Assembly: GCF_044704955.1 (NCBI RefSeq)
Contig: NC_091993.1
Coordinates: 117,118,001-117,182,000 of the forward strand
Direction: 5' to 3'
From: Pristiophorus japonicus
Lineage: Eukaryota
DNA: 64,000 bases
Part shown: positions 21,559 through 52,137 of the stretch, piece by piece
How positions within the stretch are numbered: position 1 is the first letter of the stretch
How the letters are laid out: each line of letters starts with the position of its first letter
The notes under the pieces: model-generated
What the model was told of the DNA's origin: nothing
Databases searched by the model: none
The model's input: only the letters and a program-made list of their open reading frames with translations
Made by a program: the position numbers and the translations under genes

Positions 21559-21750
21559 TTACTTTTTGAACACAATTGTAGAATACTCCATTGGTTCTGA
21601 AGCAGGAGTCTCAATAACTGAAGGCTTGATTGCCTCTTGACTGTTGGAAGGTTTCACGTTATCGTAAGTAGGAGCGTCCTCCTGAGGGCGATCGCTGGGC
21701 AGAATCGTCACAGTGGCATAAGTAACTCCTTCTGCCAGCTCTTTGGACAA
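21559..21750 (-). CDS. Gene B exon 6, terminal cytoplasmic exon with ITIM and two further Tyr motifs
   Basis: CCTTCAG| acceptor phase 0; VTYATV (ITIM consensus), PTYDNV (YxN), MEYSTI; TAA at 21561-21559. Confidence 0.9.
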   Translation of the reverse strand: MSKELAEGVTYATVTILPSDRPQEDAPTYDNVKPSNSQEAIKPSVIETPASEPMEYSTIVFKK

Positions 21751-22694
21751 CTGAAGGCAAAGAGTACAAGGAAGTGATTAATGGGAATGGAGCAACGAAT
21801 CAATTCAGCATTAAAATACAAAAATGAAAATTTAGATAATCTTTTATTTTAGAAAAAAACACTTTACATTACTGTACTATCTGTAAATAGGGAGTCAAAT
21901 CGATATCAAATGCAACTACTTGGGTTAATCAACAACTTTGTTTTTGGAAAGAATTTTAACCATTGCAGCACCACTCTCAAGTTCAAGGGATCACTGGCTA
22001 TTGGTCGGGCCTCCGTCACAGTTTGATGTATAAAAATGCCTCAGTAATTGACTTTTTCCAGTTCTGACAAAGAGTCACAGACCTGAAACGTTAACTCTGC
22101 TTCTCGCTCCACAGATGCTGCCTGACCTGCTGAGCATTTCCCAGCATTTTCTGTGTTTATTTCAGCAATTGACCTGGTTGCATATATTACATGGCCAAGT
22201 CTCTTAGCTTCAAGGCTGGAGTCCAGCCAGTGAAAACCCAGGCCCCAAAATTCTGCTTGGGCCTTGGGTGCTTCTGCAACAAATGGAGAGCAGGAAAATG
22301 GGGAGGTGCCTCACAGCTGAAAATTTCCCCAACGGGGAAGGGAGGAAGAGGGCAAGCCTTCCACTACTCCCCTCCCACCCCATGTCAAGGGGACATGTTG
22401 AGGGTGTGGGGGGGGGGGGGGGAGCTCACAGGCTACCCTGATAATACTGACCATTAACTCCTCGGGAAGCCTGAGCAAAATTTTCACCAGCTGAGAGCCG
22501 GTGAGAGTCCCGCTGAGGCCCTGGGGAAAGGCCCGAGAACTCGCGCAGCTGGAGGTGATCGATTACTTTAAGTGGCCCAGTGCTCCCTTGAGTTACAATT
22601 CTCCAACATGCCTTTACAGGCAAGGGCTGCCCTCCTTGATTTTACAGTGGTGGCCATGCTCTGGATTCAGGAAGGGGCCTGGGCCTTTGTCCAT

Positions 22695-23055
22695 CATAGG
22701 GACAGGAGGAGGCCATTCAGCCCCTCGAGCCTGTTCCGCCATTCAATGAGATCATGGCTGATCTGCGACCTAACTCCAAATACCTGCCTTTCCCCCATAT
22801 CTCTCAATACCTTTGTTTAACAAAAAGCTAATCAATCTCAGATTTAAAATCAACAATGGACCTTGCATTGACCGCCATTTACAGAACAGAAGGCCAAACT
22901 TCTGCCACCTTTGTGTTTAGAAATGTTTCCTAACAATACTTCTGAAAGGCCTGGCTTTAATTTTTAGACTATGCCCCCTAGTCCTAGATTCCCCAACTAG
23001 CAGAAATACTTTCTCTCAATCTACCCTATCTGTTCCCCTTAATATCTTAAAAACT
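22695..23055 (-). mobile_element. CR1 3' fragment
   Basis: Similarity to the other CR1 3' ends. Confidence 0.7.
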
Positions 23056-23239
23056 GCAAGCTCAGGTCTTGCTTTGCCTCAATGGCTGGGGGAAGAGAGG
23101 GATGGGGGAGGGAAATTGAATTTTGGCCTTTGCCCCAAGTTTTGCTAACCAATCCTCCCACATACACAATAAATATTGGGAGCCAGGCAGAAGAAGAAAC
23201 CAGGTAGTTCAGAGATTCCAAACTGCAAGCTGTAGGGAT

Positions 23240-23505
23240 AACAACAATAAATTGTATTTATATAGCGCCTTTAACGCAGTAAAACTTCCCAGGAGTGTTA
23301 TAAGGCACAAATTTGACACCGAGCCACATAAGGAAAAATTAGGGCAGGTGACCAAAACCTTGGTCAAAGAGGTAGATCTTAAGGAGTTTCTTAAAAGAGG
23401 AAAGAGAGGTGGAGAAGTTTAGGTATGAAATTCCAGAGCTTGAGGCCGAGGCAACAGAAGGCACGGCCTCCAATAGTGGAGCGATTATCATCAGGGGTGA
23501 TCAAA
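23240..23505 (-). mobile_element. L2-like LINE 3' end
   Basis: (TTG)n tail and GGCGCTATATAAAT end shared with the DeuSINE. Confidence 0.75.
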
Positions 23506-23605
23506 ACCTTAAAAACAATAGGATAGACCTGATTAGGTTAAAAATAAATAAATTAAAGTTAAAAATTGGATAAGGAATGGGAGAAAAAGAAAATAGTGAG
23601 GATGA

Positions 23606-25842
23606 AGATGGGTGACTTTAATATGTATATAGATTCGGCTAACCAAACTGGAAACAATACGGTGGAGGAGGATTTCCTGGAGTGCATAAGGGATGGTTTT
23701 CTAGACCAATATGTCGAGGAACCAACTAGGGGAGAGGCTGTCTTAGACTGGGTGTTGTGTAATGAGAGAGGATTAATTTGCAATCTCGTTGTGCGAGGCC
23801 CCTTGGGGAAGAGTGACCATAATATGGTGGAATTCTACATTAGGATGGAGAATGAAACAATTAATTCAGAGACCATGGTCCAGAACTTAAAGAAGGGTAA
23901 CTTTGAAGGTATGAGGCGTGAATTGGCTAGGATAGATTGGTGAATGATACTTAAGGGGTTGACAGTGGATGGGCAATGGCAGACATTTAGAGACCGCATG
24001 GATGAACTACAACAATTGTACATCCCTGTCTGGTGTAAAAATAAAAAAGGGAAGATGGCTCAACCGTGGCTATCAAGGGAAATCAGGGATAGTATTAAAG
24101 CCAAGGAAGTGGCATACAAATTGGCCAGAAATAGCAGCGAACCCGGGGACTGGGAGAAATTTAGAACTCAGCAGAGGAGGACAAAAGGTTTGATTAGGGC
24201 AGGGAAAATAGAGTATGAGAGATAGCTTGCAGGGAACATTAAAATGGACTGCAAAAGCTTCTATAGATATGTAAAGAGAAAAAGGTTAGTAAAGACAAAC
24301 GTAGGTCCCCTGCAGTCAGAATCAGGGGAAGTCATAACTGACAGTCATTTTCCAACATTCCATTGACTCTGGATCAGTTCCTATGGAGTGGAGGGTAGCC
24401 AATGTAACCCCACTTTTTAAAAAAGGAGGGAGAGAGAAAACAGGGAATTATAGACCAGTCAGCCTGACATCGGTAGTGGGTAAAATGATGGAATCAATTA
24501 TTAAGGATGTCATAGCAGCGCATTTGGAAAGAGGTGACATGATAGGTCCAAGTCAGCATGGATTTGTGAAAGGGAAATCATGCTTGACAAATCTTCTGGA
24601 ATTTTTTGAGGATGTTTCCAGTAGAGTGGACAAGGGAGAACCAGTTGATGTGGTGTATTTGGACTTTCAGAAGGCTTTCGACAAGGTCCCACACAAGAGA
24701 TTAATGTGCAAAGTTAAAGCACATGGGATTGGGGGTAGTGTGCTGACATGGATTGAGAACTGCTTTCCAGACAGGAAGCAAAGAGTAGGAGTAAATGGGT
24801 ACTTTTCAGAATGGCAGACAGTGACTAGTGGGGTACCGCAAGGTTCTGTGCTGGGGCCCCAGCTGTTTACACTGTACATTAATGATTTGGACGAGGGGAT
24901 TAAATGTAGTATCTCCAAGTTTGCGGATGACACTAAGTTGGGTGGCAGTGTGAGGTCGAGGAGGATGCTATGAGGCTGCAGAGTGACTTGGATAGGTTAG
25001 GTGAGTGGGCAAATGCATGGAAGATGAAGTATAATGTGGATAAATGTGAGGTAATCCACTTTGGTTGTAAAAACAGAGAGACAGACTATTATCTGAATGG
25101 TGACAGATTAGGAAAAGGGGAGGTGCAACGAGACCTGGGTGTCATGGTACATCAGTCATTGAAGGTTGGCATGCAGGTACAGCAGGCAGTTAAGAAGGCA
25201 AATCGCATGTTGGTCTTCATAGCGAGGGGATTTGAGTACAGGGGCAGGGATGTGTTACTACAGTTGTACAGGGCCTTGGTGAGGCCACACCTGGAGTATT
25301 GTGTACAGTTTTGGTCTCCTAACTTGAGGAAGGACATTCTTGCTATTGAGGGAGTGCAGCGAAGGTTCACCAGACTGATTCCCGGGATGGCGGGACTGAC
25401 ATATCAAGAAAGACTGGATCAATTGGGCTTGTATTCACTGGAGTTCAGAAGAATGAGAGGGGGTCTCATAGAAACGTTTAAAATTCTGATGGGTTTAGAC
25501 AGGTTAGATGCAGGAAGAATGTTCCCAATGTTGGGGAAGTCCTGAACCAGGGGTCACAGTCTAAGGATAAGGGATAAACCATTTAGGACCGAGATGAGGA
25601 GAAACTTCTTCACCCAGAGAGTGGTGAACCTGTGGAATTCTCTACCACAGAAAGTTGTTGAGGCCAATTCACCAAATATATTCAAAAGGGAGTTACTACT
25701 AAGGGGATCAAGGGGTATGGCGAGAAAGCAGGAATGGGGTACTGAAGTTGCATGTTCAGCCATGAACTCATTGAATGGCAGTGCAGGCTCGAAGGGTCGA
25801 ATGGCCTACTCCTGCATCTATTTTCTATGCTTCTATGTTTCT
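23606..25842 (+). mobile_element. 5'-truncated CR1, same subfamily as 49059-54004, with ~250-bp internal deletion near 24340
   Basis: ORF2 peptides nearly identical to those of the full copy; TTCTATG tail. Confidence 0.95.
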
Positions 25843-25894
25843 AAAATTAAAATATCTTTTTGGTATTTAATAATTTTTTAATTTTAAGTAAGCA

Positions 25895-26026
25895 TGACAT
25901 CTGTGTGCCAGGAACAAAGCAAAAGGGAATACTTATAGCAGAATTTTAAGTAAAATAATTTATACTTTTAATTCAAATTCTGCTGTAAGTATTCCCTTTT
26001 GTGCTGTTCCCTGCTCACAGATATCA
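25895..26026. other. 132-nt imperfect palindrome (hairpin with ~61-bp stem, 10-nt loop)
   Basis: CAAAAGGGAATACTTATAGCAGAATTT pairs with AAATTCTGCTGTAAGTATTCCCTTTTG. Confidence 0.85.
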
Positions 26027-26131
26027 AGGTTAATACTTAATTTTATATGCTTTGTTGGGAATATTAGACTTATGAAATTTTCACAGGAGCTTTGAAATTA
26101 CATTGCAGAATAATAAGTATGAACATTTGTT

Positions 26132-26435
26132 AGAAACATAGAAACATAGAAAATAAGTGCAGGAGCAGGCCATTCGACCCTTCGAGACTGCACCACAATT
26201 CAATATGACCATGGTTGATCATGCAACTTTAGTTCCCCACTCCCACCTTCTCGCCATAACCCCTGATCCCTTTAGCCGTAAGGGCCACACCTAACTCCCT
26301 GTTGAATATGTCCAACGAACTGGACTCAACAACTTTCTGTGGTAGAGAATTCCACAGGTTTACCACTCTCTGGGTGAAAAAGTTTCTCCTCATCTTGGTC
26401 CTATATGGCTTACCCCTTATCCTTAGACTGTGACC
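26132..26435 (-). mobile_element. CR1 3' fragment
   Basis: AGAAACATAGAAACATAG tail, matches 49059-49360. Confidence 0.85.
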
Positions 26436-26489
26436 ATTTGAAACTCCTTTCCTGCTCTTTCAAACAGGTTGACAACTCACAAAAATGGC

Positions 26490-26950
26490 TGCAGTCCCAT
26501 TTCCCCATTTCCCCTGTGCTCGCTGATCTACATTGGCTCTTGGCCCAGCAATGCCTCAAATTTTAAAATTCTCAACCTTGTTTTCAAATCCCTCCTTAAT
26601 CTTGCTCCTCCGTATCTCTGTGACCTCCTCCAGCCCTATAAACCATCCGAGATCTCTGCGCTCCTCCAATGCTGGCCTCTTGCGAATTCCCGATTTTCAG
26701 CGCTCCACCATTGACGGCCGTGCCTTCAGCTGCCTAGACCCTAAGCTCTGAAATTCCCTCCCTAAATCTCTCTGCCTCTCTACAGCTCTCTTCTCCTTTA
26801 AGAGGCTCCTTAAATCCTGACTCTTTGACCTATCCGATTATCTCCTTCTGTGGCTCGGTATCACAATGTGTTTGATAACCCTCCTGTGAAGCGCCTTGGG
26901 ACGTTTTACTACATTAACAGTGCTATATAAATGCAAGTTGTTGTTGTTGA
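26490..26950 (+). mobile_element. L2-like LINE 3' end
   Basis: FKIL.LVFKSL..LAPPYL, RSLRSS, GRAFS; (TTG)n tail. Confidence 0.85.
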
Positions 26951-27063
26951 GAGAGAAATTTCAACTGAATGCATAAACGTGTACATCTTTGATCCCAACA
27001 CACCACTTCAGGCTAGTAGATTTAGATAAACCACCCTGTTTCAATGAGAGGTTGGAGCCTTAC

Positions 27064-27119
27064 CACAGAGTTCGACTTTGGAATAGAATTTTCTATTGTT
27101 GACTCTTTCTCTCTGTTAT
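27064..27119 (-). CDS. Gene B exon 5, cytoplasmic (DNREKESTIENSIPKSNSV)
   Basis: TTTTCTAG| acceptor, GTG|GTAAGG donor, 56 nt, phase 1 to 0, open frame linking exons 4 and 6. Confidence 0.8.
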
Positions 27120-27849
27120 CTAGAAAATACAAATGTGAAGGTAATGAATGAAGCCAAGTAAAACAGCAGGAAGATTCACAATGTAACTCTTTTTTCAGTT
27201 GTGTTAAATGTCATTTAAAAAAATTTATTGCACTTTTTAATATTCCCAAGTCAATATTAGATGAAAAACTGGGCTCAATTAGAGTATTGAGCTAATTTTG
27301 GGGAAATTAAACTGGACTATACTGCACGACAACTTCAGCCATTGTGTAACAGTTAAAACCTCGCCTCACAACAATTCATTGCATAATAAAACATTGACAT
27401 CAAACATGGGTTTGTATTGGTTACTTATTGTTCGGTAAAATGCTTCCAATCTGTGTCAGGCAGTTATATTAAGACCCATTATATTTTCCGATATTGTTTC
27501 ACTGCTCAATCACCTTTCATTAACTTTTAATTGGATCCTGCAATTGTTTTTATATTTAGCTATTAGTAGGATTTTTGCTAATTGTGTTTTCTTGCGTATT
27601 AAATATTTGATCTCTTGTGGCAATTCTCTTGGGCAAAAGTGTAAAAACAACTCTGCCCCAATTTGCTTTCCTGTTTTTTTTTCTCATCTTTCCCACAGCA
27701 GCTGTTGATGATTCTGCCATCGCCATTTACACCCTATCTAGACTCATCTTTTGTTTCTTAACTTGCCCCATTACCATCTCCTTTTGCCTTGCAACATCAT
27801 CTCTTTTTGTCTCTTAATCTGTCCTGCCTTCCACCCTATCTTATATTGA

Positions 27850-28615
27850 ACCATAGAAATTTACAGTACGGAAGGAAACGATTTCGGCCGACAAGAGGTA
27901 TTCAAGCCTAACCCCACTTTCCAGCTCTTATTCCGTAGCACTGTAGGTTACAGCACTTCAAGTGCACATCCAAGTATCTTTTAAATGTGGTGAGGGTTCC
28001 TGCCTCTACCACCCTTTCAGGCAGTGAGTTCCAGACCCCCACCACCCTCTGAGTGAAGAGATTTTCCCTCGTATCTCCTCTAAACCTCCCCCCAATTACT
28101 TTTAATCTATGCCCCCTCGTTGTTGACCCCTCTGCCAAGGGAAACAGAGGTCCTTCCTATCCACTCCATCCAGGCCCCTCATAATTTTATACACCTCAAT
28201 CAGGTCTCCCCTTAGCCTCCTCTGTTCCAAAGAAAACAGACAAGCCCATCCAATCTTTCCTCATAGCCAAAATTCTCCAGTCTAGGCAACATTCTTGTAA
28301 ATCTCCTCTGAACTCTTTCCAGTGCAATCACATCTTTCCTGTAATGTGGTGACCAGAACTGCATGCAGTACTCCAGCTGCGGCCTAACCAGTGTTTTATA
28401 CAGTTCAAGCATAACCCCCCTGCTCTTGTATTCTATGCCTCAACTTATAAAGGCAAGTATTCCATATGCCTTCTTAACCACGTCATCAACCTGGCCTGCT
28501 ACCTTCAGGGATCTGTGGACCTGCACTCTTTTTTCCTCTACACTTTTCAGTGAGGTACCATTTAATGTTTATTGCCTTGCTTTGTTAGACCTCCCCAAAA
28601 GCATTACCTTACACT
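27850..28615 (-). mobile_element. CR1 3' fragment inserted into a Penelope-like 3' end (27690-27840 and 28615-28735)
   Basis: LVRPQLEYC, FTQRVVGVWNSLP; flanks match 40850-41200. Confidence 0.8.
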
Positions 28616-28987
28616 TATCTCTAACTTTTCCCAGTTCTGACGAAGGGTCAGCGACCTGAAACGTGAACTCTGTTTTTCTCTCTCTACAGATGCTGCCTGA
28701 CTTGCTGAGTAATTCCAGCATTTTCTGTTTTTATTATATATGTAAAAAAAAGTCTTAGTCTTACTGCAAAAACTGACTGCTAGCTTCTAAAATGGTGACA
28801 TATCCCCCAAAAAGGTGACAGACATAAATATAGACCTTATGACACATGGGCTCATCTTAACTTAAGCTGCAGGGATACCCAACATTCCATCACTTTTATT
28901 GCAGGCGGACAAATCTAAGTTACTTCCAGCTCCTTCCAGGCATACTACAGTGCTGACTTATGGCATGGCAGCTCACAATCACCTCAT

Positions 28988-31267: not shown

Positions 31268-32240
31268 AGAACATAAGAACATAAGAAATAGGAACAGGAG
31301 TAGGCCATACGGCCCCTCGAGCCTTCTCCGCCATTCAATAAGATCATGGACTCAGGTCCACTTCCCCGCCCGCTCCCCATAACCCCTTATCGTTTAAGAA
31401 ACTGTCTATCTCTATCTTACATTTATTCAATGTCCCAGCTTCTACAGCTCTCTGAGGCAGCAAATTCCACAGATTTACAACTCTCTGAGAGAAGAAATTT
31501 CTCCTCATCTCTGTTTTAAATGGGCGGCCCCTTATTCTAAGATCACGCCCTCTAGTTCTAGTCTCCCCCATCAGTGGAAACATCCTCTCTGCATCCACCT
31601 TGTCAAGCCCCCTCGTAATCTTATATGTTTCAATCAGATCACCTCTCATTCTTCTGAATTCCAATGAGTAGAGGTCCAACCTACTCAACCTTTCCTCATA
31701 AGTCAACCCCCTCATCCCCGGGATCAACCTAGTGAACCTTCTCTGAACTGCCTCCACAGCAAGTATATCCTTTCTTAAATATGGAAACCAAAACTGCACG
31801 CAGTATTCCAGGTGTGGCCTCACCAATACCTTATATAGCTGTAGCAAGACTTCCCTGCTTTTATACTCCATCCCCTTTGCAATAAAGGCCAAGATTCCAT
31901 TGGCCTTCCTGATCACTTGCTGTACCTGCATACTATCCTTTTGTGTTTTATGCACAAGTACCCCCAGATCCCGCTGTACTGCAGCACTTTGCAATCTTTC
32001 TTCATTTAAATAATAACTTACTCTTCGATTTTTTTTCTGCCAAAGTTCATGACCTCACACTTTCCGACATTATACTCCATCTGCCAAATTTTTGCCCTCT
32101 CACTTAGTCTGTCTATGTCCTTTTGCAGATTTTTTGTGTCCTCCTCGCACGCACATTGCTTTTTCTCCCATCTTTGTATCATCAGCAAACTTGGCTATGT
32201 TACACTCAGTCCCTTCTTCCAAGTCGTTAATATACATTGT
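31268..32240 (-). mobile_element. 5'-truncated CR1 (RT C-terminus plus TTCTTATG tail)
   Basis: YINDL, FADDTK, LVRPHLEYC, FFSQRVVNLWN. Confidence 0.93.
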
Positions 32241-32338
32241 AGAAGGTTGTTCCATATCACATGGTTGGTTTTCGTCTAGTTCCTTTGAAAGATAGAATGA
32301 CTCCGCTGCATGAAAATTGGTTAAGTTTCTGAACTTAC

Positions 32339-32439
32339 CGTTATCTTTGTGCTTTCTTATTTTTTTGATAACTAGGATCACAAGTCCGAGAAGCATCATC
32401 GCCAAAGTCCCAAAGATTATCCCGAGTATTATGAAAAGC
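32339..32439 (-). CDS. Gene B exon 4, transmembrane plus basic stop-transfer (LFIILGIIFGTLAMMLLGLVILVI-KKIRKHKDN)
   Basis: 24 apolar residues with no charge followed by KKIRK; AAG| acceptor, G|GTAAGT donor, phase 2 to 1. Confidence 0.9.
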
Positions 32440-33159
32440 CTTGGCAGTTTATGAAAAACAGAGAAGTTCTATGAGTATAGGGACAGACATAATCAGCCAT
32501 ATATGGACCAGGATAGGTAATCCTGCACAGTAACACAACATTTTACAATATTTGCAATATCTCCCAGATGATATGACAGGGTATCGGACTGGACTATTGT
32601 CCCATGTCACTGATTTAATGGTCCAACTATGATAGTTTAATGACTCAGGGGGGTAGACTTTCCTGAGAGCCCCTCAACGCCTGATTGCCCACCAAGAAAA
32701 AACACTAACATTTTGTAAGTAACGCCGGTGAAAATTTCCACTTTTAAATTAAAACTAATCACCCAGCGAGAAAATGGGTCTTGCACCATTATTCTCGGTG
32801 GTTAAAAGGGGAAAGGAGTTCTGATGAAAAGTCATCCACTTGAAGCATTATCCCTGTATCTCTCTCTCCACAGATGCTGCCTGACTTGCTGAGTGTTTTC
32901 TGTTTTTATATTATGATTGTTTAATCCTCAGGCAATTCCAGTCTCCCTGGGCTGATCATTTTTAAATTTTCAGCTCATGCACTGTGATGCTGAAACAAAT
33001 GACCTCATTACAGTAATGGCAAGATTAACTTTGTTATTGTAACGTTAACCATAGATAACCAAAATAGTACAGGAGTATCATCAGACAAAATGTGACACCG
33101 AGCCACATAAGGAGATATTAGGACAGGTGACCAAAAACTTAGTCAAAGAGATAAGCTAA

Positions 33160-33748
33160 ATTGTCTGAGTTGCGCATCCTAGATTTATTTTGCTCCACCA
33201 TTGGCAGCCATGCTGGCTTTTTAAAAAATGTGTTTATGGGATGTGGGTGTCACTGGCAAGGCCAGCATTTATTGCCCATCCCTAATTGCTGCAATCCATG
33301 TGGTGAAGGTGCTCCCACAGTGCTGTTAGGGAGGGAGTTCCAGGATTTTGACCTAGTGACGATGAAGGAATGGCAATATGATTCCAAGTCAGAATGGTGT
33401 GTGACTTGGAGGGGAACGTGGAGGTGGTGGTGTTCCCATGCGCCTGCTGCCCTTGTCCTTCTAGGTGGTAGAGGTCGTGGGTTTGGGAGATGCTGCCGAA
33501 GAAGCCTTGGCCTAGGCCCTTAGTTCTCGAATTCCCCTCCCTAAACCTCTCTGCCTCTCTCCTCCTTTAAGTCACTCCTTAAAACGTACCTCTTTCACTA
33601 AGCTTTTGGTTGCCTGCCCTAATATCTCTTTATAGGGCAGGCAACCAAAAGCTCAGCATCAAATTTTGTCTGATAACCCTCCTGTAAAGCATCTTGGGAC
33701 GTTTTACTACATTAAAGGCGCAATATAAATGCAAGTTGTTGTTGTTAT
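33160..33748 (+). mobile_element. L2-like 3' end interrupted by another LINE tail (33215-33510, minus)
   Basis: Matches 26690-26950 on both sides of the insertion. Confidence 0.7.
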
Positions 33749-34294
33749 GAATGTCAAATTATAAAGCATTTACTACTGCTTGTCCAGTTGTCCCTTTCCC
33801 CCTCCAAGCTCTTTTCTTTTCATCTCCTATTTTTAACATTCGCCTTTGTTTCGAACACACCATGGAATAAAATTCCTGCAGGGGCTGTCCCGATCTCCCA
33901 GCAAAACCTCAACAGATGATCAGAGGAAATCCTGGAGAAACAGCTCACCCCTCCTTTAAAAATAAATAGATTTTTTTTTTCCAGTTTACCTACCTTTCTG
34001 AGCCTGCAGGTCCTACCATTCAGTAGACACAGAATTGAACCACCCCATCGTGCAAATGGCTTAACTAAACTAAAATTTGGAAAATATTGCACGATTACCA
34101 CACAACACTCTATTCTACCATTGTCACAAGCCAAAGAGAAGATCTAAACTTTCGATAGTTCTCCACCATCGAGGGTTTGTCTTGGATCATGTCTGGGTCT
34201 GTTGTAGACCAAACTGATAGAGATTTATTGCTATGGTTAGTCAACAACTCCATTATCGTTGTATCATGTGACTGACAGGGTGGTTAAAAACAAA

Positions 34295-34713
34295 GACTTG
34301 CATTTATGTAGCGCCTTTCACGACCTCAGAACGTCTCAAAGTGCTTTACAGCCAATGAAGTACTTTTTTGAAGTGTAGTCACTGTTGTAATGTAGGAAAC
34401 GCAGCAGTCAAGCTCCCACAAACGGCAATGTGATAATGATCAGATAATCTGTTTTAGTGCTGTTAAGTGAGGGATAAATATTGACCAGGACACCGGGGGT
34501 AACTCCCCTGCTTCTCTTCAAAATAGTGCCATCATTAATGCCCACGTGAGAGAGCAGGGGGGCCTCGGTTTAACATCTCATCTGAAAGACAGCATCTCCG
34601 AGAGTGCAGCACTCCCTCGGCATTGCACTGGAGTATCAGCCTAGATTTTCTGGAGTGGGACTTGAACCCACAACCTTCTGACTCAGAGGCAAGTGTGCCA
34701 CCCACTGAGCCAC
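34295..34713 (-). mobile_element. Full-length DeuSINE
   Basis: Head TGTGGCTCAGTGG to tail on the minus strand. Confidence 0.85.
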
Positions 34714-35104
34714 ATTAGAAAATGAAGTGGGTAGACCTCGGCCTTCTTTTGTCTAGCAATTCCGATGTTCCTCAACTCAGCCCCAGGCTGGAGGCTGATA
34801 CTTTATATCACTGTGCAGACTATGAAAAGCGAGTGTGTATTGACTGCACAGTCTTTATCCAACACTGATATTTCTCCATAATTTGGACCATAGGTATCAG
34901 GCAAGACCCTATATTGACTCTGTTTCTGCATCCATAAAACAATGAAAAGCGTTTTAAGTTCTATTACTTAATCAGGTAACCATTGTAAATACAGGACACC
35001 CATGAATCCTAGTCTGACGTGCTCTTGGATATCCTCGAGTTATGCAGTGGATTCATTACATGAATGTCGTATCACACTGGGACCCAGCACTTCAATCAAC
35101 ATCA

Positions 35105-35560
35105 CCATCATCATCATAGGCGGTCCCTCGAACAAGGATGACTTGCTTCCACGAGTTCACAGGTGTTTAGATGAAGGACCCCAATGTTCCAGTCCTGAAC
35201 TCCAATTGAGGGGGTGGAAGATGCCTGTGCATGGATTTTTCTTAACGTATGTTGGCCGTTCCACACCAACCACCACACGGGCTTGACAGAGCTAGGCCTT
35301 TATCCAGTGGCAAGGGTTAACCTTGGACTGGAGACTTGCTCTGCTGCATGGACCTAGTGTCGCAGTGTGGGCTGGCCCGTGCTGCCCCAGGCCCTCGGCT
35401 CTTCTGGGCCCCTCTGTCGTAGCTCCGTCACGATCTCGCGCCGCTCCTCCGCCATAAACATTCACCGCATCTCGCCACAAACACTCGCTGCTCATCCGCC
35501 CCGACCTTCCCACTCCTCTGTACCTGGGCCCTGCCGATGTTCCTGCCCATGCTCCAAAAT
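35105..35560 (-). mobile_element. RTE-tailed non-autonomous element
   Basis: Same family as 40310-40740. Confidence 0.75.
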
Positions 35561-35644
35561 GGCTTCAATCAACACATAGATGTTAAATGACAAACCTGTC
35601 TTACTGTTACAAACTGTTATGATGCGCTGTTAAGTAGAGTTATG

Positions 35645-36315
35645 CTACAGCAAGCAATAAGGAAGGCAAATGGCATGTTGTCCTTTATTGCAACGGGGTT
35701 GGAGTATAAGAGTAAGGAAGTCTTACTACAATTGTACAGGGCCTTGGTGAAACCACACCTGGAGTACTGTACACAGTTTTGGTCTCCTTATCTAAGGAAG
35801 GATATACTTGTCTTGGAGGTGGTGCAACGAAGGTTCACTAGATTGATCCCTGGGATGAGAGGGTTGTCTTATGATGAGAGATTGTGTAGAATGGGCCGAT
35901 ACTCTCTGGAGTGTAGAAGGATGAGAGGTGACCTCATTGAAACATACACGATTCTGAAGGAGATTGACAGGGTAGATGCTGAGAGGTTGTTTCCCCTAGC
36001 TGGAGTGTCGAGAGCTAGGGAACACAGTCTCAGGATAAGAGGTCAGAAATTTAAGACTGAGATGAGGAGGAACTTCTTCACTCAGAGGGTTGTGAATCTT
36101 TGGAATTCTCTGCCTCAGCGGGCTGTGGATGCTGAGTCTCTGAATATATTCACGGTAGATAGATTTTTGGGGGCTAGGGAAATCAAGGGATATGGGGATC
36201 GGGCGGGAAAGTGGAGTTGAGGTCGATGATCAGCCATGGTCTTATTGAATGGCGGAGCAGACTCGAGGGGCAGTATGGCCTACTCCGACTCCTAGTTCTT
36301 ATGTTCTTATATTCT
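35645..36315 (+). mobile_element. CR1 3' fragment
   Basis: 192-aa ORF of the CR1 ORF2 C-terminus, TTCTTATG tail. Confidence 0.9.
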
Positions 36316-37871
36316 TAAATATTACAAGCAGTTTTAGTCAAAGATTTTTAGTTATTGCAGTTCTAGGATGTGGTTGACTTGTAAAATATGGAATTAAAGG
36401 ACCAGTATGAAAGATACATTTCTCTAAAGGTCAGAATTAAACTTGTATCACAAATAAGGTAACAATTACACCTTTTAAAAATTGCAGTCTTGTCATTTGA
36501 AGTTATTTTTCTGATTTTAATGACTATAGCTTCAGAAATGCATAATAGGTGAAATCACACTCTGATCACTCCTATCTCTTGCAGAGAGCCAGCACGGGTT
36601 TGATGGGCTGAATGGCCTTCTTCCGTGCTGTAACCATTGCGATCTCTTGGATTTCTGCTAGTTATGGGGGTAATTTTACGAATTCTTGCTCCTGGCAGGG
36701 AGCTTTGCCCTTCGGGTGCACATATTGAATATTTGGGTTGGCGCTGCCCATTATATTCTGACCAATCATTTTAATGGTCAGAATGGGCCTGAATTTCCAA
36801 CAGGCACTTGTGGTCAGCGGGGCTCCTCATTAGGACTTCAGACGTGTAAGGTTACTGTTGTGGAGTTAGAATTAGTTGGGTGAAGGTCAGAAATCAGGAG
36901 CATAAATACATGAACTGTGTCTCTACATTAATACATGAATGGTGTTTCCTACATTACAACAGTGACTACACTTCAAAAAAAGTACTTTGGGGTGTCCGGT
37001 GGTCGTGAAAGGTGTGACTGATTCGATCTCCATTGGGAAGCTGAAATAAATAAATAATTGAGAAAGGGACACTAATTTTCCATCCTAGTTATCTTTATCA
37101 TCCACCTGTACATAAGAATGGCTAAAACAATTTGGCTGCAATGGATTGGCACATACATAACTACACCAGCACCTACACATGCATTGAACACTAAATATAA
37201 AGAAAGCAATCTTGCATATTTATGATAGCGTTTTTACTGTAGGCATACTAATAATACGGTTGTACAGGACGGTGAGGTTTGAAAAATGCCTTTTCATCGC
37301 TGGAAGCTGTGTTTGAATCCAACTCAAGCTGATGGGATGATGATCTCTTCTCCTCGCCTACTCTAAAGATTTGGGTTCGAGTAGTCTTAGCCCAGTCCAC
37401 AGAAGGCAAAGGTCAACGGCACCAAAACACCCATAATTCCGCACCAGTTGCCAATTCTTTGGCAGTTGGGCGACAGGGGTTGCGGGTGGCAAATGGAATT
37501 GGCGCAGTAGATGGCTGTCCTCGGAGTCGAAGGGGGTGAATTCCCTCAGCGCCGTTACTTCACCAGTAGCCTCGATTACACCCTGACCCTCTGCCGAAGT
37601 TACACCGGCGGAACGGAAGCAGCCCCCAGGAAATTAACCCCACCTCCCCCACCTAGTTTCAAGCACAATGTTAAGTCGGTGCTGGTGCTGAACATGAAAG
37701 CCATTCTACAGCATCGACATTCCTCACTTTGGGATCACAGTCACCTGGACTCCACCAGAGAAACAATAGCACAATATCTCACATGGCAGCAGGAGATATC
37801 TCATTATTCTACCTGTGCAGATATAAAACAAACGCTCAGAATACAGCAGTGCAAATACATTTGACTTTTAC

Positions 37872-37908
37872 CTTAGTCTTTCCTTGTCCGAAGGAAATAG
37901 CTTTTGAC
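37872..37908 (-). CDS. Gene B exon 3, 37-nt stalk exon (GQKLFPSDKERLR)
   Basis: TTTTTAACAG| acceptor and AG|GTAAAA donor; phase 1 to 2, exactly what is needed to join the Ig exon to the TM exon. Confidence 0.8.
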
Positions 37909-38222
37909 CTGTTAAAAATGATGCATAAAAATATTATTTGATTATTTACTATCCTCGTGTTATAGATTCACTCAAAACTGTCAATATACTTTAGCAGTAA
38001 TTACCGATAAAAGTTCAAAATTCTGATTAGATAGGATCCTGAAAAGTGTTTTTCAGTATTGTCTTGGCTCATTCTTAACAGAGTTATAATTTAAACACTC
38101 TACTGAGAAATTAGGATCTTGGAGGTTTTGAAAAATATATAATAAAGCATGTATCAAATTAAATAAACTTGTTATTGAACAAAAGTATATTTGAAAAATG
38201 TACACACTACATTGTGTCCTAC

Positions 38223-38555
38223 CTTCAGTAACTTTAAGTTCTGTGGGACTTAAATAGTCCAGAAGGTGATGTCTTTCTATTCCACACCAGTACCACCCCT
38301 TATCGTTGGTTGTTAATTGATCCATTTGTACCGTAAGTTGTCCATTTTTATTATCAGCTGAAATTTTTATTTTGCCATCATGGCTTTTCATCATAGGACC
38401 GTGGGTCTGTACTAACACATGACAGGTCGCCCTGTTGTAGCCTCTGCACCAATACTTTTGATGATTGCTGTAATACGGGTCAAATCTGCAAGTGATAGTG
38501 ACTGGTCTTCCCACGGTTGCACTCGTTACCTTTGGTCCACTTATTGCATGCGCAA
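38223..38555 (-). CDS. Gene B exon 2, V-set Ig domain of CD300/pIgR/TREM type
   Basis: 333 nt, acceptor TTACAG|, donor G|GTAGGA, phase 1/1; motifs VTITC, KYWCRG..C (extra C-C' Cys pair), DKGWYWCG. Confidence 0.95.
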
Positions 38556-40740: not shown

Positions 40741-40849
40741 TGACATTACAGGAATTAGATGTGGTGTATTTGTAGAACAGTTTGTTCCCACTTATTCATA
40801 CTCAAATTTCCTCTTATTGAGTTCGGGAAACAAGGGGTGAAGGTGCAAA

Positions 40850-41410: not shown

Positions 41411-41948
41411 TGAAAGTGGTTGTGTCGATAATTAAAATGCCTGTATCCATGTCCGGGTCAGACCTCCTCAGTCAGTAGCTGCTGTTCCAGGAGCTGATAT
41501 AACATGTCACAATAATGCCTGGTGAATTGAGCCGTCACAGGCCAATGTGAGTTTCAAGAAAATGCAAGCTGAGTTGTTTGCAAGAATACCACAGAGCGGT
41601 ATATCAATCACCTCTGAAACTCGTTACATCAGGTATGATCTTTATAGTGCACATTGATGAAGTCTGTGGGGTGGTTTTGGTTTGCTCTTTCTGTGGTGAC
41701 ATCCTGCTATATAGACCTTAGCCTTTCATCTTGGTTTCTCAATAATTAAAACAAATATATAGATAGTCTATAGAAAGAACATTTCCTACAAAGGGACCAT
41801 TATTTATGCATTATTTTTTGAATCTATTTTCAAGTTATTGCTCTCACCTATTAACCTAACTTCTTGAGCATTTCTTTATTCCTCTCTACATATAGCATAA
41901 GGTCTTCCTACATTACAACAGTGACTACACTTCAAAAGTACTTATTTG

Positions 41949-42528
41949 GTTGTACAGGGCCTTGGTGAGACCACACCTTGAATATTGTGTACAGTTTTGG
42001 TCTCCTAATCGGTGGAAGGACGTTCTTGCTATTGAGAGAGTGCAGCGAAGGTTCACCAGACTGATTCCCGGGATGACAGGACTGACATATGAAGAAAGAC
42101 TGGATCGACCAGGCTTATATTCACTGGAATTTAGAAGAATGAAAGGGGATCTCATAGAAACATATAAAATTCTGACGGGATTGGACAGGTTAGATGCAGG
42201 AAGAATGTTCCCGATGTTGGGGAAATCCAGAACCAGGGGTCACAGTCTAAGGGTAAGGGGTAAGCCATTTAAGACCGAGATGAGGAGAAACTTCTTCACT
42301 CAGAGAATTGTGAACCTGTGGAATTCTCTACCACAGAAAGCTGTTGAGGCCAGTTCGTTAGATATATTCAAAAGGGAGTTAGATGTGGCCCTTACAGCTA
42401 AAGGGATCAAGGGGTATGGAGAGAAAGCAGGAAAGGGGTACTGAAGTTGCATGATCAGCCATGATCATATTGAATGGTGGTGCAGGCTCGAAGGGCCGAA
42501 TGGCCTACTCCTGCACCTATTTTCTATG
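41949..42528 (+). mobile_element. CR1 3' fragment inserted into a DeuSINE tail (41905-41948 and 42529-42590)
   Basis: 164-aa ORF2 C-terminus; SINE sequence continuous across the insertion. Confidence 0.9.
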
Positions 42529-43127
42529 TAAAGCACTTTGGGACGTCCGGTAGTTGTGAAAGGCGCTAAAGAAATTCAAGTCTTTCTTTCATCCGAAGCC
42601 TCAATGTTGTGGCCCCATGAAGTGGTCATAACTCTAGTTAACGTGGTTCTACAATGTCCTGGGTCTTTGAGTAGAGTAGAAGTGATCCCACTTACATTTA
42701 GGTGAAATTAAGAGCGCCAGGAAGAATGGAGGATGAATAGTGAGCATACAATATATGTGTGCGCCGTTCTTTAAAGGCTGCAATTGCATATATTGTCTGG
42801 TGATGGAGTTTCTCAGCTGGATTTTATGGGTGGACAGACAGAAGTGGCAGCCAGGGACATCCAGTGGGGGGGGGGTGTCCTTTGACATAAGCCAGCATTC
42901 CATTTCTGGAGGAGCCCTTGGAAAAGTACCACCTCTTTTAAATAGCCGGACTGCCACTGGATATAAACTGGGCCTAAATATCTGTCATCTTCTCTATGAG
43001 GAGTAAAACCAGCTCATGTGGTGGATGCTGATGCGCAGAATTTCTTTCAAGCGAGAGTTGGACCTGTTTTTGGCTGGGACGGAGATCACCTCTTACAATC
43101 AGTATGTACCTGGTAACGTTAATCAAT

Positions 43128-43600
43128 AACAACAACTTGTATTTATATAGCGCCTTTATCGTAGTGAAAACATCCCAAGGTGCCTCACAGGAGTATTATG
43201 AGATTAAATATTTGACACCGAGCCAAGCAAGTAGAAATTAGGGCAGGTGACCAAAAGCTTGGTCAAAGAGGTAGGCTTTAAGGAGCGTCTCGAAGGAGGA
43301 AAGAGAGGGAGAGAGGCGGAGAGGTTTAGGCAGGGAGTTCCAGACCTTGCGGTCTAGGCAATAGAAGACACCAATGGTTGAGCGATTATAATTAGGGATG
43401 CTCTAGAGGGCAGATTTAGAGGATCACAGGGGTTGTGGGGCTGGAGGACATTACAGAGATAGGGAGGGGTGAGGCCATGGAGGGATTTGAAAACAAGGAT
43501 GAGAATTTTGAAATCGAGGCGTTGTTTAACCGGAAGTCAATGTAGGTCAGCGAGCGGTGATGGGTGAGCGGGACTTGGTGCGACTTAGGAGACGAGCAGC
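43128..43600 (-). mobile_element. L2-like LINE 3' end
   Basis: Matches 48740-49058 and 62955-63315. Confidence 0.8.
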
Positions 43601-43765
43601 CAAGTGGTCTCCTGGATTAGTTTTGATCGCCTAATGGGGTCAGAGAGGAATTTTCCACAATTTTTATACCCTATTTGTTATCTGTTTTTATGCTTCTCCC
43701 AGGGGATTACTTGGCTCTGGGTGGGGTGGGGAGTGACTGTACTCTGATGCACGAGACATCACAAC

Positions 43766-43928
43766 CAACGTTGCCGCTAAACTGCACAGCCGTGCAACTG
43801 TCTGGAGGTCCTGTGCAGGCCGCTCACCGGCTTTTCAATGGGAATAACTGCACATATGTGAAAATTTGGATGGGACTTGCAGCTCTTTAAAGGAACTGTG
43901 CACCAAAAAAAAATTAGGGGGAACTTTG
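43766..43928. mobile_element. hAT-like MITE
   Basis: TIRs CAACGTTGCCGCTAA / TTAGGGGGAACTTTG, 8-bp TSD ATCACAAC/ATCACTTC; decayed relative at ~19933-20075. Confidence 0.65.
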
Positions 43929-44034
43929 ATCACTTCTGCATGGGACAGGCTGGATGCACCAGTAGCTCTTTTCCTGTCCCTCATTTTTGCACTTGTACAT
44001 GACTTATGACAGTACCTTTTGTCACCAAGTCCTA

Positions 44035-44425
44035 TTCCAAAGACTGGAGCACATAAATCTAGGCTGACACTCCAGTACAGTGCTGAGGGAGTGCTGCACT
44101 GTCGGAAGTGCCGTCATTCGGATGAGGCGTTAAACCGAGGCCCCGTCTACTCTCTGGAACTGGATGTAAAAGATCCTATGGCACTATTTTGAAGAAAAGC
44201 AGGGGAGTTATCCCCGGTGTCCTGGCCAATATTTATCCCTCAATGAACATCACAAAAACAGATTATCTGGACATTATCACATTGCTGATTGTGGGAGTTG
44301 CTGTGCAAAAATTGGCTGCTGCGTTGCTCACATTACAACAGTGACTACACTCCAAAGGTACTTAATTGGCTGTCCGGTGGTCATGAAAGGCGCTATATAA
44401 ATGCAAGACTTTCTTTTTTCTTTTT
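44035..44425 (+). mobile_element. DeuSINE
   Basis: Matches 3790-4190. Confidence 0.85.
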
Positions 44426-44989
44426 AAGCATACACAAGGAGGGACTATGTGAACACATTTTAAATGAGAACTAATGCAAGCAATATTTCTGTTCATTAAC
44501 CGAACGGTAAATCACTTTGAGAATCGGAGGTAAAAGATGTCAAACTGGCTGAAAATAAGTGTTGACCCAATGAATTAAGTTGCACCTTGCATCCTCTGTT
44601 TTAATTTGAAATCAGTGTTGTTTCTGGTTTTCAACAGCAAAGTATTTTTGCTCATTAAAGGATGTTTCTTAAAGAGTATGGAAGACTTTGAAGAGCAGTA
44701 ACTCAGTGAGGTTCCTGCTGTACCACCTTTAAAACTTGTTGTGTGTGTACATTTAGCTTCCTGTTTAAATAGGCTTAAGATAAAACTGTGTGGTAAATGT
44801 GGGCAAAGCAGCACGACTTTAAAGATGTAGAGGTAAAAATTTACGCGAGCTGCCAAGGCCTGTTGTGCCTCCACAGGCAGCTTGCTTATTTTAATTGCAA
44901 GAAAAGAAGCCCTGGGTTTTGAGAGGAGGCAGGGAGGGATTTCAGCAGCAATGGCCCTTCTAAACTCCACAGGAAGGTTTTTTTTTTAA

Positions 44990-45426
44990 AACATAGGATT
45001 ACATAGGATATATGGCACAGAAACAGGCCATTCGGCCCAACCAGTCCATACCGGCGTTTATGCTCCACTCGAGCCTCCTTCCGTCTTTCCTCATCTAACT
45101 CTCTCAGCATAACCCTCTATTCCCTTCTCCCTCATACGCTTGTCCAGCCTCCCCTTAAATGCATCGATACTATTCACTTCAACCACTCCCTGTGGCAGCG
45201 AGTCCCACATTCTCACCACTCTCTGGGTAAAGAAGTTTCTTCTGAATTCCCGATTGGATTTCTTGGTAACTATCTTATATTGATGGCCTCTCGTTATGCT
45301 CCTTCCCACAAGTGGGAACGTTCTCTCTGTCTCCACTCTGTCAAAACCTTTCATAATTTTAAAGGCCTCTATTAGGTCACCCCTCAGCCTTCTTTTTTCA
45401 AGAGAAAAGAGACCCAGCCTGTTCAT
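44990..45426 (-). mobile_element. CR1 3' fragment (different subfamily)
   Basis: LGLFSLEKRRLRGDLIE..FFTQRVVRMW. Confidence 0.88.
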
Positions 45427-45735
45427 TTAAATTTGTTTGAAAAAAAACGTATCTTTTGGGGACAGCTGCTGAAGAATCTTGAATGGGGCAGGCCCAACGC
45501 CCGAACAAAGGCCCAATCCAAGTTTGGGTCGGCTGCTTTTCATGCTCCCTTTGGGCGCAGGACATTGATCTATGAAAATGGGCCTTGTTGAGCCCGTTTT
45601 AGGTGCGAAAATGGGCGTGAATGAGGTCCAAAAGAAAGACTTGCATTTCTATTGCACCTTTTGCGACCACTGGATGTCCCAAAGCACTTTACAAACAATG
45701 AAGTACTTTTTGAAGTGTAGTCACTGTTGTAGTGT

Positions 45736-47391
45736 CAGAAACAGAAAGTAAACATTATTGTTAAATAATCTTGTGACCATTTTTAATGGTGAAATTTTAG
45801 CTTCCAATTGTCGAATAAACTATCCCATGTCTTTGCTGATCCGTATGAACGTCAAAGTCTATAAAGTGAACAAAACGGTTTTATGCTCATGTTGACCAAA
45901 AGGGGAATTTCACTTCCCTGCGTGTTAAACAGGAAGAATCCGACAACAATCTGTTGCAACATTCTGCCTTTTTATCGGTAGTTCTGATTAACTTATTTAA
46001 CTGTGTTTTTAAGTCATGAAATATTTTCACTATTGTTGACAATAAACCAAAAATTGTCTCTATTTTGCACCTTCGGGAAATACTCGGTACCATTAGCAAC
46101 CAGAGGACCTCATTTTGGCTCCATTATAAGTCGTCTTTCTGCCTGTTTCATGTGGGTTTCTCTGAACGATTGTAAAAGCCCTGTAAAACCGCTCACACCT
46201 AACTTATCTCCAAGCACAGCATTACTTTCCGGACACGTGTTGAATTTTAAGGACAGAGCTCATTATTTTGTAAAACAATGACTGTTTATTGAAATAATCA
46301 GATGCAAATCTAAATATCTTTGTCATGTTTCAAATGCTATCTAGATATGTTTTTAGAGACAAATGACAATGGATGCTATTTCCTGCAACATTGTCATCTC
46401 CCAAATAACATAACGACTCAGATTTTTATAAAGCAGTGATTGGTGAGGCAGAATGGTCAGTATGTTTGATTGTGGATAGTTTATATAAAGAGCTTTAAAC
46501 CGAAGCAAGTGGATTTGGTGACAGTGGTGGCTTTAAGTTGGCCGGTCAATATTCCGAGCATGCTAAGTTCTTCTGGATCTATCCAGTTTTAACTAAAAAT
46601 GGGAAATGCCTATCACAGATAACTCTCTGCCTTTTCTAACCTCTCCCCACAATACTAGGCCTGGTAAAACAGAAGAAAATATAAATATTAAAATAAGTTC
46701 ACAGACCTTTCTTTATTGAGATTGTTCTAGTATAGATGCCACCCTCTTGCCTGTGACCCATTATTCTGCCAAAGAAAATGATCTCTTACGAATGATCTCA
46801 TCTGCACATTTAATAAAGGCACTGGACAAAATCAATTTGAAATAGCTTCCCGAACTTGCAAAGGAACTCAAGATTGCCAATTTGGGTGATCTTGGCTCTT
46901 AGTAATTACCAACATCACTAAAACAGATTCCCCTGGTCATTGTCACATTGCTGTTTGTGGGAGCTTGCTGTGCGCAAATTGGCCCTCTTGTTGCTAATGG
47001 TACCGAGTATTTCCCAAAGATAATAAATACAAACAATTTTTGGTTTATTATCAACAATAGTGAAAATATTTCATGACTTAAAAACAGTTAAAAAAAAGTT
47101 AATCAGGACTACCGATAAAAAAAAAGGCAGAATCTTGCAACGGGTTGATTACAAAATTCTTCCTGTTTAACCCGGAGAGAAGTGAAATTCCCCTTTTGGT
47201 CAACGTGACCGTGTTGTTCACTTTATAGACTTTGACGTTAGCAAAGACCTATTAGCAAAGACATGGCATTTCTCCCCATGTCAGATGTAGTCACCACATT
47301 GCATAGGCAAGTTTATTCGATAATTAGAAGCTAAAATCTCACCATTAAAAATGATCGCAAGGTTATTTAACAATGTTACTTTCTGTTTCTG
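45736..47391. repeat. Long inverted repeat, arms ~45736-46107 and ~46983-47391
   Basis: Arms are diverged reverse complements, e.g. GGGAAATACTCGGTACCATTAGCAAC / GTTGCTAATGGTACCGAGTATTTCCC. Confidence 0.92.
45902..45936. promoter_or_regulatory. Candidate leukocyte enhancer core: kB-like site overlapping an EICE, plus an ETS site
   Basis: GGGGAATTTC 45902-45911; GGAAGTGAAA (minus) 45908-45917; ACAGGAAG 45929-45936. Confidence 0.45.
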
Positions 47392-47999
47392 CTTTGGTAA
47401 TTCTGAAAGTGACAGGAAATGCAGCGTTTGAGAGATTTAAAATGGTGATTATATGATGTCTTGTTTTCACCTAATAGTTACCCGCTGGTTGCATATATAT
47501 TGATGTTAGTAAACATTATGTATTAAACGCGAACTCGAAATTAGTTGGTTTCACAACCAATTTATTAACTAAATTTTAACTGATAGGCTGAACAAGTCAG
47601 TACATATAAAATGCCCAGATTATACTATGCATAAAGTCCCATTAATTACAACTTCAGATAGAGCAGAAAAATAATCCGTCTGATCCGAGAATTCACCTCA
47701 TCCACATTTCAGCTCCGAGCTTCACAACAATTAAGACCAAAGAAAATGATAATGAAAGCAGGTTTGAATTGATAAAATGAGGTTCGATTGTATTACTTGT
47801 AGTGTAAAATAGGAGACATGTACTTAATTTTTCCTCAAAGGCAATCAATGCTGATCTTGAAAAAGAATCGCATTTTGAAAAGCAGTTGGAAGATATTTCT
47901 TAGTAGAGGTTTCCCAACAGATGACATTTCTGGTCAGACTTGTGTCAATAAATGTTTCCAATACTTCCAAAAATCCAAATAAGACCAATATTTTCTTAC

Positions 48000-48039
48000 C
48001 TGATAGGAAAGCAATGAACAGCAGAAAGGTAAACCCCAT
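48000..48039 (-). CDS. Gene B exon 1 (signal peptide MGFTFLLFIAFLS+G) of CD300/pIgR-like inhibitory receptor
   Basis: ATG at 48039, 13 hydrophobic codons, phase-1 donor CAG|GTAAGA; joins exon 2 to give MGFTFLLFIAFLSVAHA-ISGP. Confidence 0.85.
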
Positions 48040-52135: not shown

Positions 52136-52137
52136 TA

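Follow-up and report, generated by a model that had tools for sequence, protein, structure and literature searches.

Gene structure and transcription

The subject of this report is a receptor gene of the Japanese sawshark, Pristiophorus japonicus. It lies in the window analysed here, a stretch of 64,000 nucleotides (nt) from contig NC_091993.1 (positions 117,118,001 to 117,182,000), and occupies its minus strand from 48039 to 21559; all coordinates below are those of the window. A preliminary description of this DNA, made from the letters alone, had proposed six exons spliced in phase into a protein of 252 amino acids (aa), had read that protein as a CD300LF-like inhibitory receptor, and had guessed that the genome was that of a shark. 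The guess was right, and the exon model agrees with what we find in splice sites, lengths and translation. In our judgement it is quite probable that this is a functional, transcribed gene for a type I receptor of the CD300/pIgR-like V-domain superfamily, and that, within a lineage present throughout chondrichthyans, the receptor represents the long-tailed member of inhibitory type.

All introns are GT-AG, with phases 1, 1, 2, 1 and 0 in order, and the exons, all on the minus strand, add up to 40+333+37+101+56+192 = 759 nt, that is, 252 codons and a stop. Exon 1 (48039-48000, 40 nt) starts with an ATG in an A-rich Kozak context and ends at the donor GTAAGA in phase 1. It encodes most of the signal peptide, MGFTFLLFIAFLS, whose cleavage is likely to fall after AHA, inside exon 2. 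Exon 2 (38555-38223, 333 nt, phase 1-1) lies between the acceptor ...CTTACAG and the donor GTAGGA and carries the V-set immunoglobulin domain. The short stalk, QKLFPSDKERL, comes from exon 3 (37908-37872, 37 nt, donor GTAAAA), and the transmembrane helix from exon 4 (32439-32339, 101 nt), which has a weak acceptor, ...CTGCCAAG, and the donor GTAAGT. Exon 5 (27119-27064, 56 nt, donor GTAAGG) encodes the cytoplasmic segment NREKESTIENSIPKSNSV, and exon 6 (21750-21559, 192 nt including the TAA) the tail with its tyrosine motifs. The first AATAAA past the stop codon is at 20906 on the minus strand, 652 nt downstream.

The exons were read from the sequence, and they agree with a mechanical search for AG...GT intervals that have open frames; the window is free of N runs. 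As had been pointed out, the 37-nt and 56-nt exons are missing from the track of open reading frames (ORFs): the former is in no ORF of at least 30 aa, and the latter is inside a 36-aa ORF (27022-27132), hence below the default 60-aa cut. The joined translation equals, letter for letter, P0001, a 252-aa UniRef entry of Pristiophorus japonicus in which exon 1 accounts for residues 1-13. A search with exon 2, with scoring restricted to the exon, returned the same entry at 100% identity under the name 'transmembrane domain-containing protein TMIGD3-like'.

The predicted junctions can be compared with RNA. Two public runs of one study, X1 and X2, contain exon 2, and we compared them over positions 32325-38324. 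A 420-nt contig from X1 and a 704-nt contig from X2 each match the end of exon 2 and exon 4, with 36 letters between. That spacer, in both contigs, and the depth in the bin 37725-37924 fit the use of exon 3. Depth is 0 in the unique intron bins, and intronic depth is restricted to repeats. This is the pattern of spliced RNA in which exons 2, 3 and 4 are joined. The X2 contig extends 4 nt beyond exon 4 with one mismatch, which fits the ATAA of exon 5 versus the GTAA of the intron, and from this overrun we infer a direct join of exons 4 and 5. The junctions between exons 2 and 3 and between exons 3 and 4 are seen in two runs, and that between exons 4 and 5 is probable. The X2 contig also implies a 3' untranslated region of at least about 150 nt.

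Two sites suggest variation in splicing. At the intron 3 donor (37864-37871), reading through exon 3 (AG|GTAAAAGT) adds an arginine and then meets TAA. Retention of intron 3 could possibly yield a secreted isoform of 137 aa with the V domain only; an annotated isoform X2 of Stegostoma (P0004, 138 aa) ends in ...KERLR, the same C-terminus as that of the read-through product. In batoids, annotated isoforms X1 have a further 24 aa, encoded by a cassette exon that sits between exons 4 and 5. The sawshark homologue of this exon is found in intron 4 at 30147-30084 on the minus strand (64% identity and E = 1.5e-5 in a tblastn search with residues 172-193 of P0009). There the AG acceptor is kept, an in-frame TGA stands at codon 23, and the sole GT would give an exon of 64 nt and a frame shift. 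From its sequence, this is a decayed or poison exon and lies outside the 252-aa product.

A sceptic might propose that the model is non-functional or mis-predicted and that its frame is open by chance. The introns are full of debris of long and short interspersed elements (LINEs and SINEs), the acceptor of exon 4 is weak, and one ancestral cassette exon has decayed. Against these stand the spliced RNA contigs from two runs, the intact frame, and full-length orthologues with 54-76% identity whose signalling tyrosines are invariant across sharks and rays. A chance origin is excluded because the translation is 100% identical to an independent gene model and has full-length orthologues, and we hold the whole proposal to be extremely improbable.

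The V domain

Searched alone, exon 2 matches the Pfam V-set family PF07686 with E = 1e-13; this is the single V-set match of the protein (residues 21-122). The exon contains four cysteines (C36, C50, C58 and C104), the KYWC..C motif and the FG region GWYWCGIERHHLLD. In alignments to pIgR the four cysteines fall in line with the two-disulfide pattern of pIgR domains. A signal peptide, one V-set domain and one transmembrane helix, the single-V arrangement that goes with membership in CD300, are all present.

Among PDB sequences, phmmer scores are 57 bits for CLM-6, 56.8 for CD300LF, 54.5 for CD300A and 44-53 for pIgR domains (53 for D4); lower come NKp44 at 39.6, TREM-1/2 at about 28 and antibody V domains at 38 or less. 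In an AlphaFold model built with 11 orthologues, the chain forms a beta-sandwich and a single long helix (residues 130-170) and ends in a tail that is disordered. The best PDB fold matches of this model are NKp44, CD300lf, pIgR D1, TREM2, CD300c and CD300a (TM by target 0.68-0.78), and the nearest atlas clusters are CMRF35-like molecule 3/1 and pIgR-like, with scores of 0.94-0.96. Placement of the receptor in the CD300/pIgR/TREM/NKp44 group of V domains, as originally suggested, is supported by the bit scores of CD300 proteins (54-57) and of pIgR D4, and the fold matches agree.

These scores invite another reading, namely that the receptor binds immunoglobulins in the manner of pIgR, the Fc alpha-mu receptor or FcmuR, and is not a lipid sensor of the CD300 type. 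The V domain does score 44-53 bits against individual pIgR domains, and the gene adjoins multi-V 'pIgR-like' genes. We nevertheless find this very unlikely. There is one V domain (only one V exon stands between the signal and transmembrane exons), followed by a stalk of 13 residues, and the protein has an ITIM (immunoreceptor tyrosine-based inhibitory motif) tail in place of a transcytosis-type tail.

Transmembrane segment and tail

The transmembrane segment, LFIILGIIFGTLAMMLLGLVILVI, contains none of the residues D, E, K, R and H and is followed by a basic stop-transfer sequence, KKIRKHKDN. Three tyrosines of the tail lie in recognizable motifs. Y200 (codon 21720-21718) is in VTYATV, the only canonical ITIM in the sawshark protein; Y218 (codon 21666-21664) is in a Grb2-type YxN motif, TYDNV; and Y245 (codon 21585-21583) is in the C-terminal MEYSTIVFKK, where EYSTI resembles an ITIM or an ITSM (immunoreceptor tyrosine-based switch motif). 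The signal peptide, the four-cysteine V domain, the uncharged transmembrane segment and the ITIM tail had all been claimed beforehand, and each is found where it had been placed.

Conservation is strong in this part of the protein. Y200 and Y245 are invariant (11/11 orthologues), and YxNV at Y218 is present in 9/11. Across the orthologue alignment (n=11), VTYAxV, EYST and the C-terminal F-KK do not vary, and the core of exon 5, ENSxPKSNS, is kept in the 11 orthologues bar one substitution (G for E in Rhinoraja). At position -2 of Y245 the orthologues have T, I or L, which makes the motif an ITSM or an ITIM. A long ITIM-bearing tail together with a transmembrane segment that lacks charge defines the inhibitory subtype of CD300 (PMC7247439), and the sawshark protein has both.

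How old is this tail? A profile of the cytoplasmic part, searched against the fetched family proteins, matches two shark multi-V paralogues (P0025 and P0079), a coelacanth 'CLM-1' (E = 1.5e-5) and a paddlefish 'CLM-1' (E = 4e-4); a match to a CLM-like protein of a turtle is weak. The order of motifs in the matches is the same: an ITIM, then YxN(V/L/M), then VEYS(T/S/V)-x near the C-terminus. Since the pattern is kept in the coelacanth, paddlefish and turtle proteins, it is older than the divergence between cartilaginous and bony vertebrates. The tail exon gave no match among PDB sequences at E up to 10; nothing can be read from this, as the tail is probably missing from the CD300 chains with solved structures.

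Two other candidates came up for this region and were rejected. With the transmembrane segment and tail as query, the atlas returned TREM-like transcript 1 with a score of 0.85, below the trusted level. The SIT1 family (PF15330, SHP2-interacting transmembrane adaptor) matches the transmembrane segment and tail end to end, with sub-threshold E = 3e-4 to 0.11; P0001 scores 13.5 bits with the SIT model and its orthologues 18-22 bits, short of the gathering cut-off of 27.6. In the atlas, the same sub-threshold match of SIT type is frequent among clusters that bear the CLM-1 name. Because the score is below the Pfam threshold, we did not use the match to assign membership.

Orthologues, siblings and the V-domain tree

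Full-length orthologues are annotated in at least 10 elasmobranchs, with 54-76% identity and 100% coverage, mostly as 'CMRF35-like molecule 1'; the genera include Heptranchias, Carcharodon, Rhincodon, Pristis, Mobula, Narcine and Rhinoraja. The sawshark gene itself is in public annotation with the exact 252-aa model. The gene is therefore no discovery, since automatic annotation already contains both it and its orthologues; it is an ordinary, experimentally unstudied member of its family. The preliminary description had presented it as an intact and probably uncharacterised receptor. Intact and experimentally unstudied it is, and our searches for CD300/CMRF35-like receptors of sharks and other cartilaginous fish found no paper on it in the library used. 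The implied novelty does not hold: the gene was annotated before, and the skate MDIRs, which are CD300/pIgR/TREM-like receptors of cartilaginous fish, have been on record for years (PMC3031540). Prior annotation with this very structure had been named at the outset as something that would tell against the claim, and with P0001 and the annotated orthologues in the databases this is largely the situation. What is new here is the chondrichthyan clade with short siblings, three of the four with an arginine in the transmembrane segment, the recurrence of the tail in bony vertebrates, the TMIGD3-like kin in a caecilian, and the relic cassette exon.

A HMMER scan with the orthologue profile found 3353 relatives at E ≤ 0.001, with multi-V 'pIgR-like' proteins dominating the top. 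We built a tree of 69 V domains. The V domain of the sawshark gene is placed in a starred clade of 12 orthologues from elasmobranchs, which joins four short chondrichthyan proteins (170-176 aa) in a starred clade of 16 (support 98/91). Three of the short proteins, P0065, P0120 and P0108 (170-173 aa), come from Mustelus, Narcine and one Logan contig; their transmembrane segment, of the FIWSxLRWxFLAIL type, includes an arginine, and they have no tail. The fourth, P0087 (176 aa), is from Callorhinchus and groups with the other three, without the LRW-type transmembrane motif. With it the V-domain lineage of the sawshark receptor extends to a chimaera. A charged transmembrane segment and no signalling tail are the signature of activating CD300 receptors that couple to adaptors (PMC7247439). 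By this comparison the short siblings are probably activating partners, and the two kinds together a paired-receptor system. No counterpart of the short siblings was found in the 64-kb window.

V-domain phylogeny had been proposed as a way of placing the receptor. It does delineate a distinct chondrichthyan clade, and it makes no decision among groupings with CD300, with TMIGD3 and with multi-V proteins. The label 'CD300-like' is safe on these data, and assignment to CD300LF, CD300A or TMIGD3 is left open by the tree. Accordingly 'CD300LF-like', the term used originally, is fair as a statement of likeness, and a one-to-one orthology with CD300LF would go beyond the tree.

Could the gene be, in cartilaginous fish, the orthologue of TMIGD3, an orphan Ig/TM gene of tetrapods that has an exon in common with ADORA3? 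This would change the identity of the gene and leave a mechanism of inhibition of the ITIM type. The public name of the sawshark protein, 'TMIGD3-like', points this way, and so does a caecilian protein, P0133, named 'adenosine receptor A3-like', in which ADORA3 is followed by a single V domain, a transmembrane segment and a tail. Among single-V relatives found in tetrapods, this TMIGD3-like part is the nearest. Starting at the V domain, the immunoglobulin part of P0133 is collinear with P0001 down to the final residues (28% identity, E = 3e-25), and VIYSSI and VEYSTISYK of the caecilian protein correspond to VTYATV and MEYSTIVFK of the sawshark one. Outside the orthologue set, the FG motif GWYWCGIERxHLLD occurs only in P0133 (about 190 family proteins were scanned). 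In the maximum-likelihood tree, P0133 and domain 2 of a coelacanth CLM-8 together form the sister group to the chondrichthyans. The exon count of the sawshark gene, six, is also that of human TMIGD3 i3, whose exons are T1-T6 (PMC5133659).

Other evidence pulls back from this identification. Support for the sister relationship is weak (69/83), and approximately unbiased tests keep both a grouping with mammalian CD300/pIgR-like domains (p = 0.078) and one with elasmobranch multi-V domains (p = 0.32). A tblastn search with the ADORA3 part of P0133 found no ADORA3 exon in the 64-kb window, which is short for judging adjacency in a shark genome. The caecilian immunoglobulin part is identified as TMIGD3 solely through its fusion to ADORA3; TMIGD3 is its most likely identity because isoform 1 of human TMIGD3 likewise shares its first exon with ADORA3 (PMC5133659). 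We regard orthology to TMIGD3 as a tentative possibility. If true, it would mean that the orphan TMIGD3 descends from an ITIM-bearing, CD300-like receptor with a partner that has a charged transmembrane segment. It would also mean that the FG loop GWYWCGIERxHLLD, which would face the ligand, has been preserved from the time when cartilaginous and bony vertebrates parted, and this would suggest one ancient conserved ligand.

A different identification follows the names that NCBI gives to the elasmobranch orthologues, CMRF35-like molecule 1, and would make the gene a strict one-to-one orthologue of mammalian CD300LF (CLM-1). CD300LF is among the best single-domain PDB matches, the combination of an ITIM, a Grb2-type YxN and a distal ITIM/ITSM is similar to what has been described for CD300f, and the atlas clusters named CLM-1 often share the sub-threshold tail signal of SIT type. 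Automatic names follow best matches, however, and pIgR D4, CLM-6 and CD300A score equally well. The sole mammalian CD300 in the tree, CLM-3 of Grammomys, is outside the group that contains the chondrichthyan clade (85/83). CD300 expansions look lineage-specific, and the sawshark tail has no YxxM motif. To us strict CD300LF orthology seems unlikely.

Neighbouring genes and repeats

In mammals the CD300 gene cluster lies at 17q25 in human and on chromosome 11 in mouse. The 64-kb window contains only family members and repeats. Two further V exons lie on the minus strand at 213-545 and 1445-1786 and are 35-41% identical to the V domain of the sawshark gene. They are closer to domains 2 and 1 of P0025, a 'pIgR-like' protein of Heptranchias (68-69% identity), and to domains of P0015 of Stegostoma (63-64%). 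They belong to a multi-V gene that runs off the start of the window, and they fall in a clade separate from the starred one of the V domain discussed above. The two-V neighbour gene spans 218-13067, and the receptor gene is one member of a local receptor cluster.

P0015 is itself a curious entry. This 'pIgR-like' protein of Stegostoma tigrinum (638 aa) consists of the orthologue of the sawshark receptor (residues 1-253, with a complete tail) fused to the two neighbour V domains. The entry probably arose by merging of gene models, and it would then imply that in the zebra shark, too, the two genes lie side by side.

A nearly full-length LINE is found directly upstream of the gene (49155-53064, minus strand). 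Two of its ORFs, 366 and 383 aa long, encode reverse transcriptase; a third of 244 aa is endonuclease-like, and one of 278 aa resembles ORF1. Similar LINE fragments are scattered through the introns, for example at 23566-25545 (+), 31344-31994 (-), 35642-36220 (+) and 41950-42444 (+). A minisatellite at 7583-8037, which translates as (GGGEVVLG)n from one of its strands and as (HHLPTPQ)n from the opposite one, produces long spurious ORFs in three frames.

Proposed function

If the receptor works as its architecture suggests, its V domain would bind a ligand, which by analogy with CD300, a family with lipid ligands such as PS, PE and ceramide, may be a lipid or something else exposed on membranes. 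Src-family kinases would then phosphorylate Y200 (VTYATV) and Y245 (EYSTI). The phosphorylated tyrosines would recruit SHP-1/SHP-2 and so damp activation driven by immunoreceptor tyrosine-based activation motifs (ITAMs). Y218 (YDNV) may add coupling to Grb2, of the kind described for CD300f, and the short siblings with an arginine in the transmembrane segment are probably the activating counterparts of the long ITIM form. This scheme is patterned on what is established about how ITIM receptors, and CD300a/f, behave; the CD300 family and signalling by CD300f through its ITIM, Grb2 and SHP-1/2 have been described (PMC7247439, PMC4415817). The preliminary description had already drawn an inhibitory, SHP-recruiting receptor from the uncharged transmembrane segment and the ITIM tail, and this is a reasonable thing to draw from them. 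The architecture, the splicing of exons 2, 3 and 4 and the conservation of the tyrosines are seen directly.

Several facts weigh against so simple a picture of a transcribed gene for an inhibitory CD300-like receptor. That X1 and X2 are RNA is deduced from exon-only coverage, and the joins that are directly seen are confined to exons 2, 3 and 4 and do not extend to exons 1 and 2 or to exons 5 and 6. In the sawshark, Y245 has a methionine at -2, so that the motif is neither a textbook ITIM nor a textbook ITSM. We found no YxxM motif, which would bind phosphoinositide 3-kinase (PI3K), in the tail, unlike in CD300f. Compared with mammalian CD300f the stalk is only about 13 residues long and the ectodomain has no N-glycosylation sequon. 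A word-index search with the tail of the coelacanth CLM-1 returned only the query and reached no mammalian CD300LF or CD300A tail. The structure model is modest too, with a mean pLDDT (predicted local distance difference test) of 56 and values of about 55-79 for the V domain.

What, then, is the significance of the gene? At the simplest level, the check shows that a gene model built by hand was exact. The comparative interest is in an inhibitory CD300-like receptor whose signalling tyrosines are invariant across sharks and rays and which has a probable activating sibling. There is also a possible tie to TMIGD3, about whose role in mammals next to nothing is known. The two kinds of receptor offer a defined pair with which to ask how old innate sensing by paired ITIM and adaptor-coupled receptors is.

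Comparison with known systems

The closest likeness is to CD300LF/CLM-1 and CD300A. These too are type I proteins with one two-disulfide IgV-like domain and an uncharged transmembrane segment, and their long tail has an ITIM, a Grb2-type motif and a distal tyrosine of ITIM/ITSM character. As with the paired CD300 receptors, the sawshark lineage includes short-tailed siblings, most of them with a charged residue in the membrane. Unlike in CD300LF and CD300A, the stalk is very short and YxxM is absent, and V-domain identity to them is only 25-28%.

TMIGD3 is similar in having a single V domain, a transmembrane segment, a tail and six exons, and the caecilian TMIGD3-like protein shares the FG loop and the C-terminal VEYSTI. 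It differs in its association with ADORA3, of which the 64-kb window has no exon. To our knowledge the function of TMIGD3 is barely known, and it has not been described as an ITIM receptor.

With pIgR and the elasmobranch 'pIgR-like' multi-V genes the sawshark receptor shares the V-domain family and the cysteine pattern, and the shark multi-V paralogues P0025 and P0079 carry the same tail with three tyrosines. Unlike pIgR, which has two to five V domains, it has one. SIT1, unlike the sawshark receptor, has no immunoglobulin domain, and the likeness there consists of the sub-threshold match of transmembrane segment and tail. Finally, there are the MDIRs of skate (MDIR1-5) and zebrafish, a multigene family of activating and inhibitory receptors with CD300/TREM/pIgR-like V domains (PMC3031540). 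By that description they resemble the sawshark receptor and its relatives.

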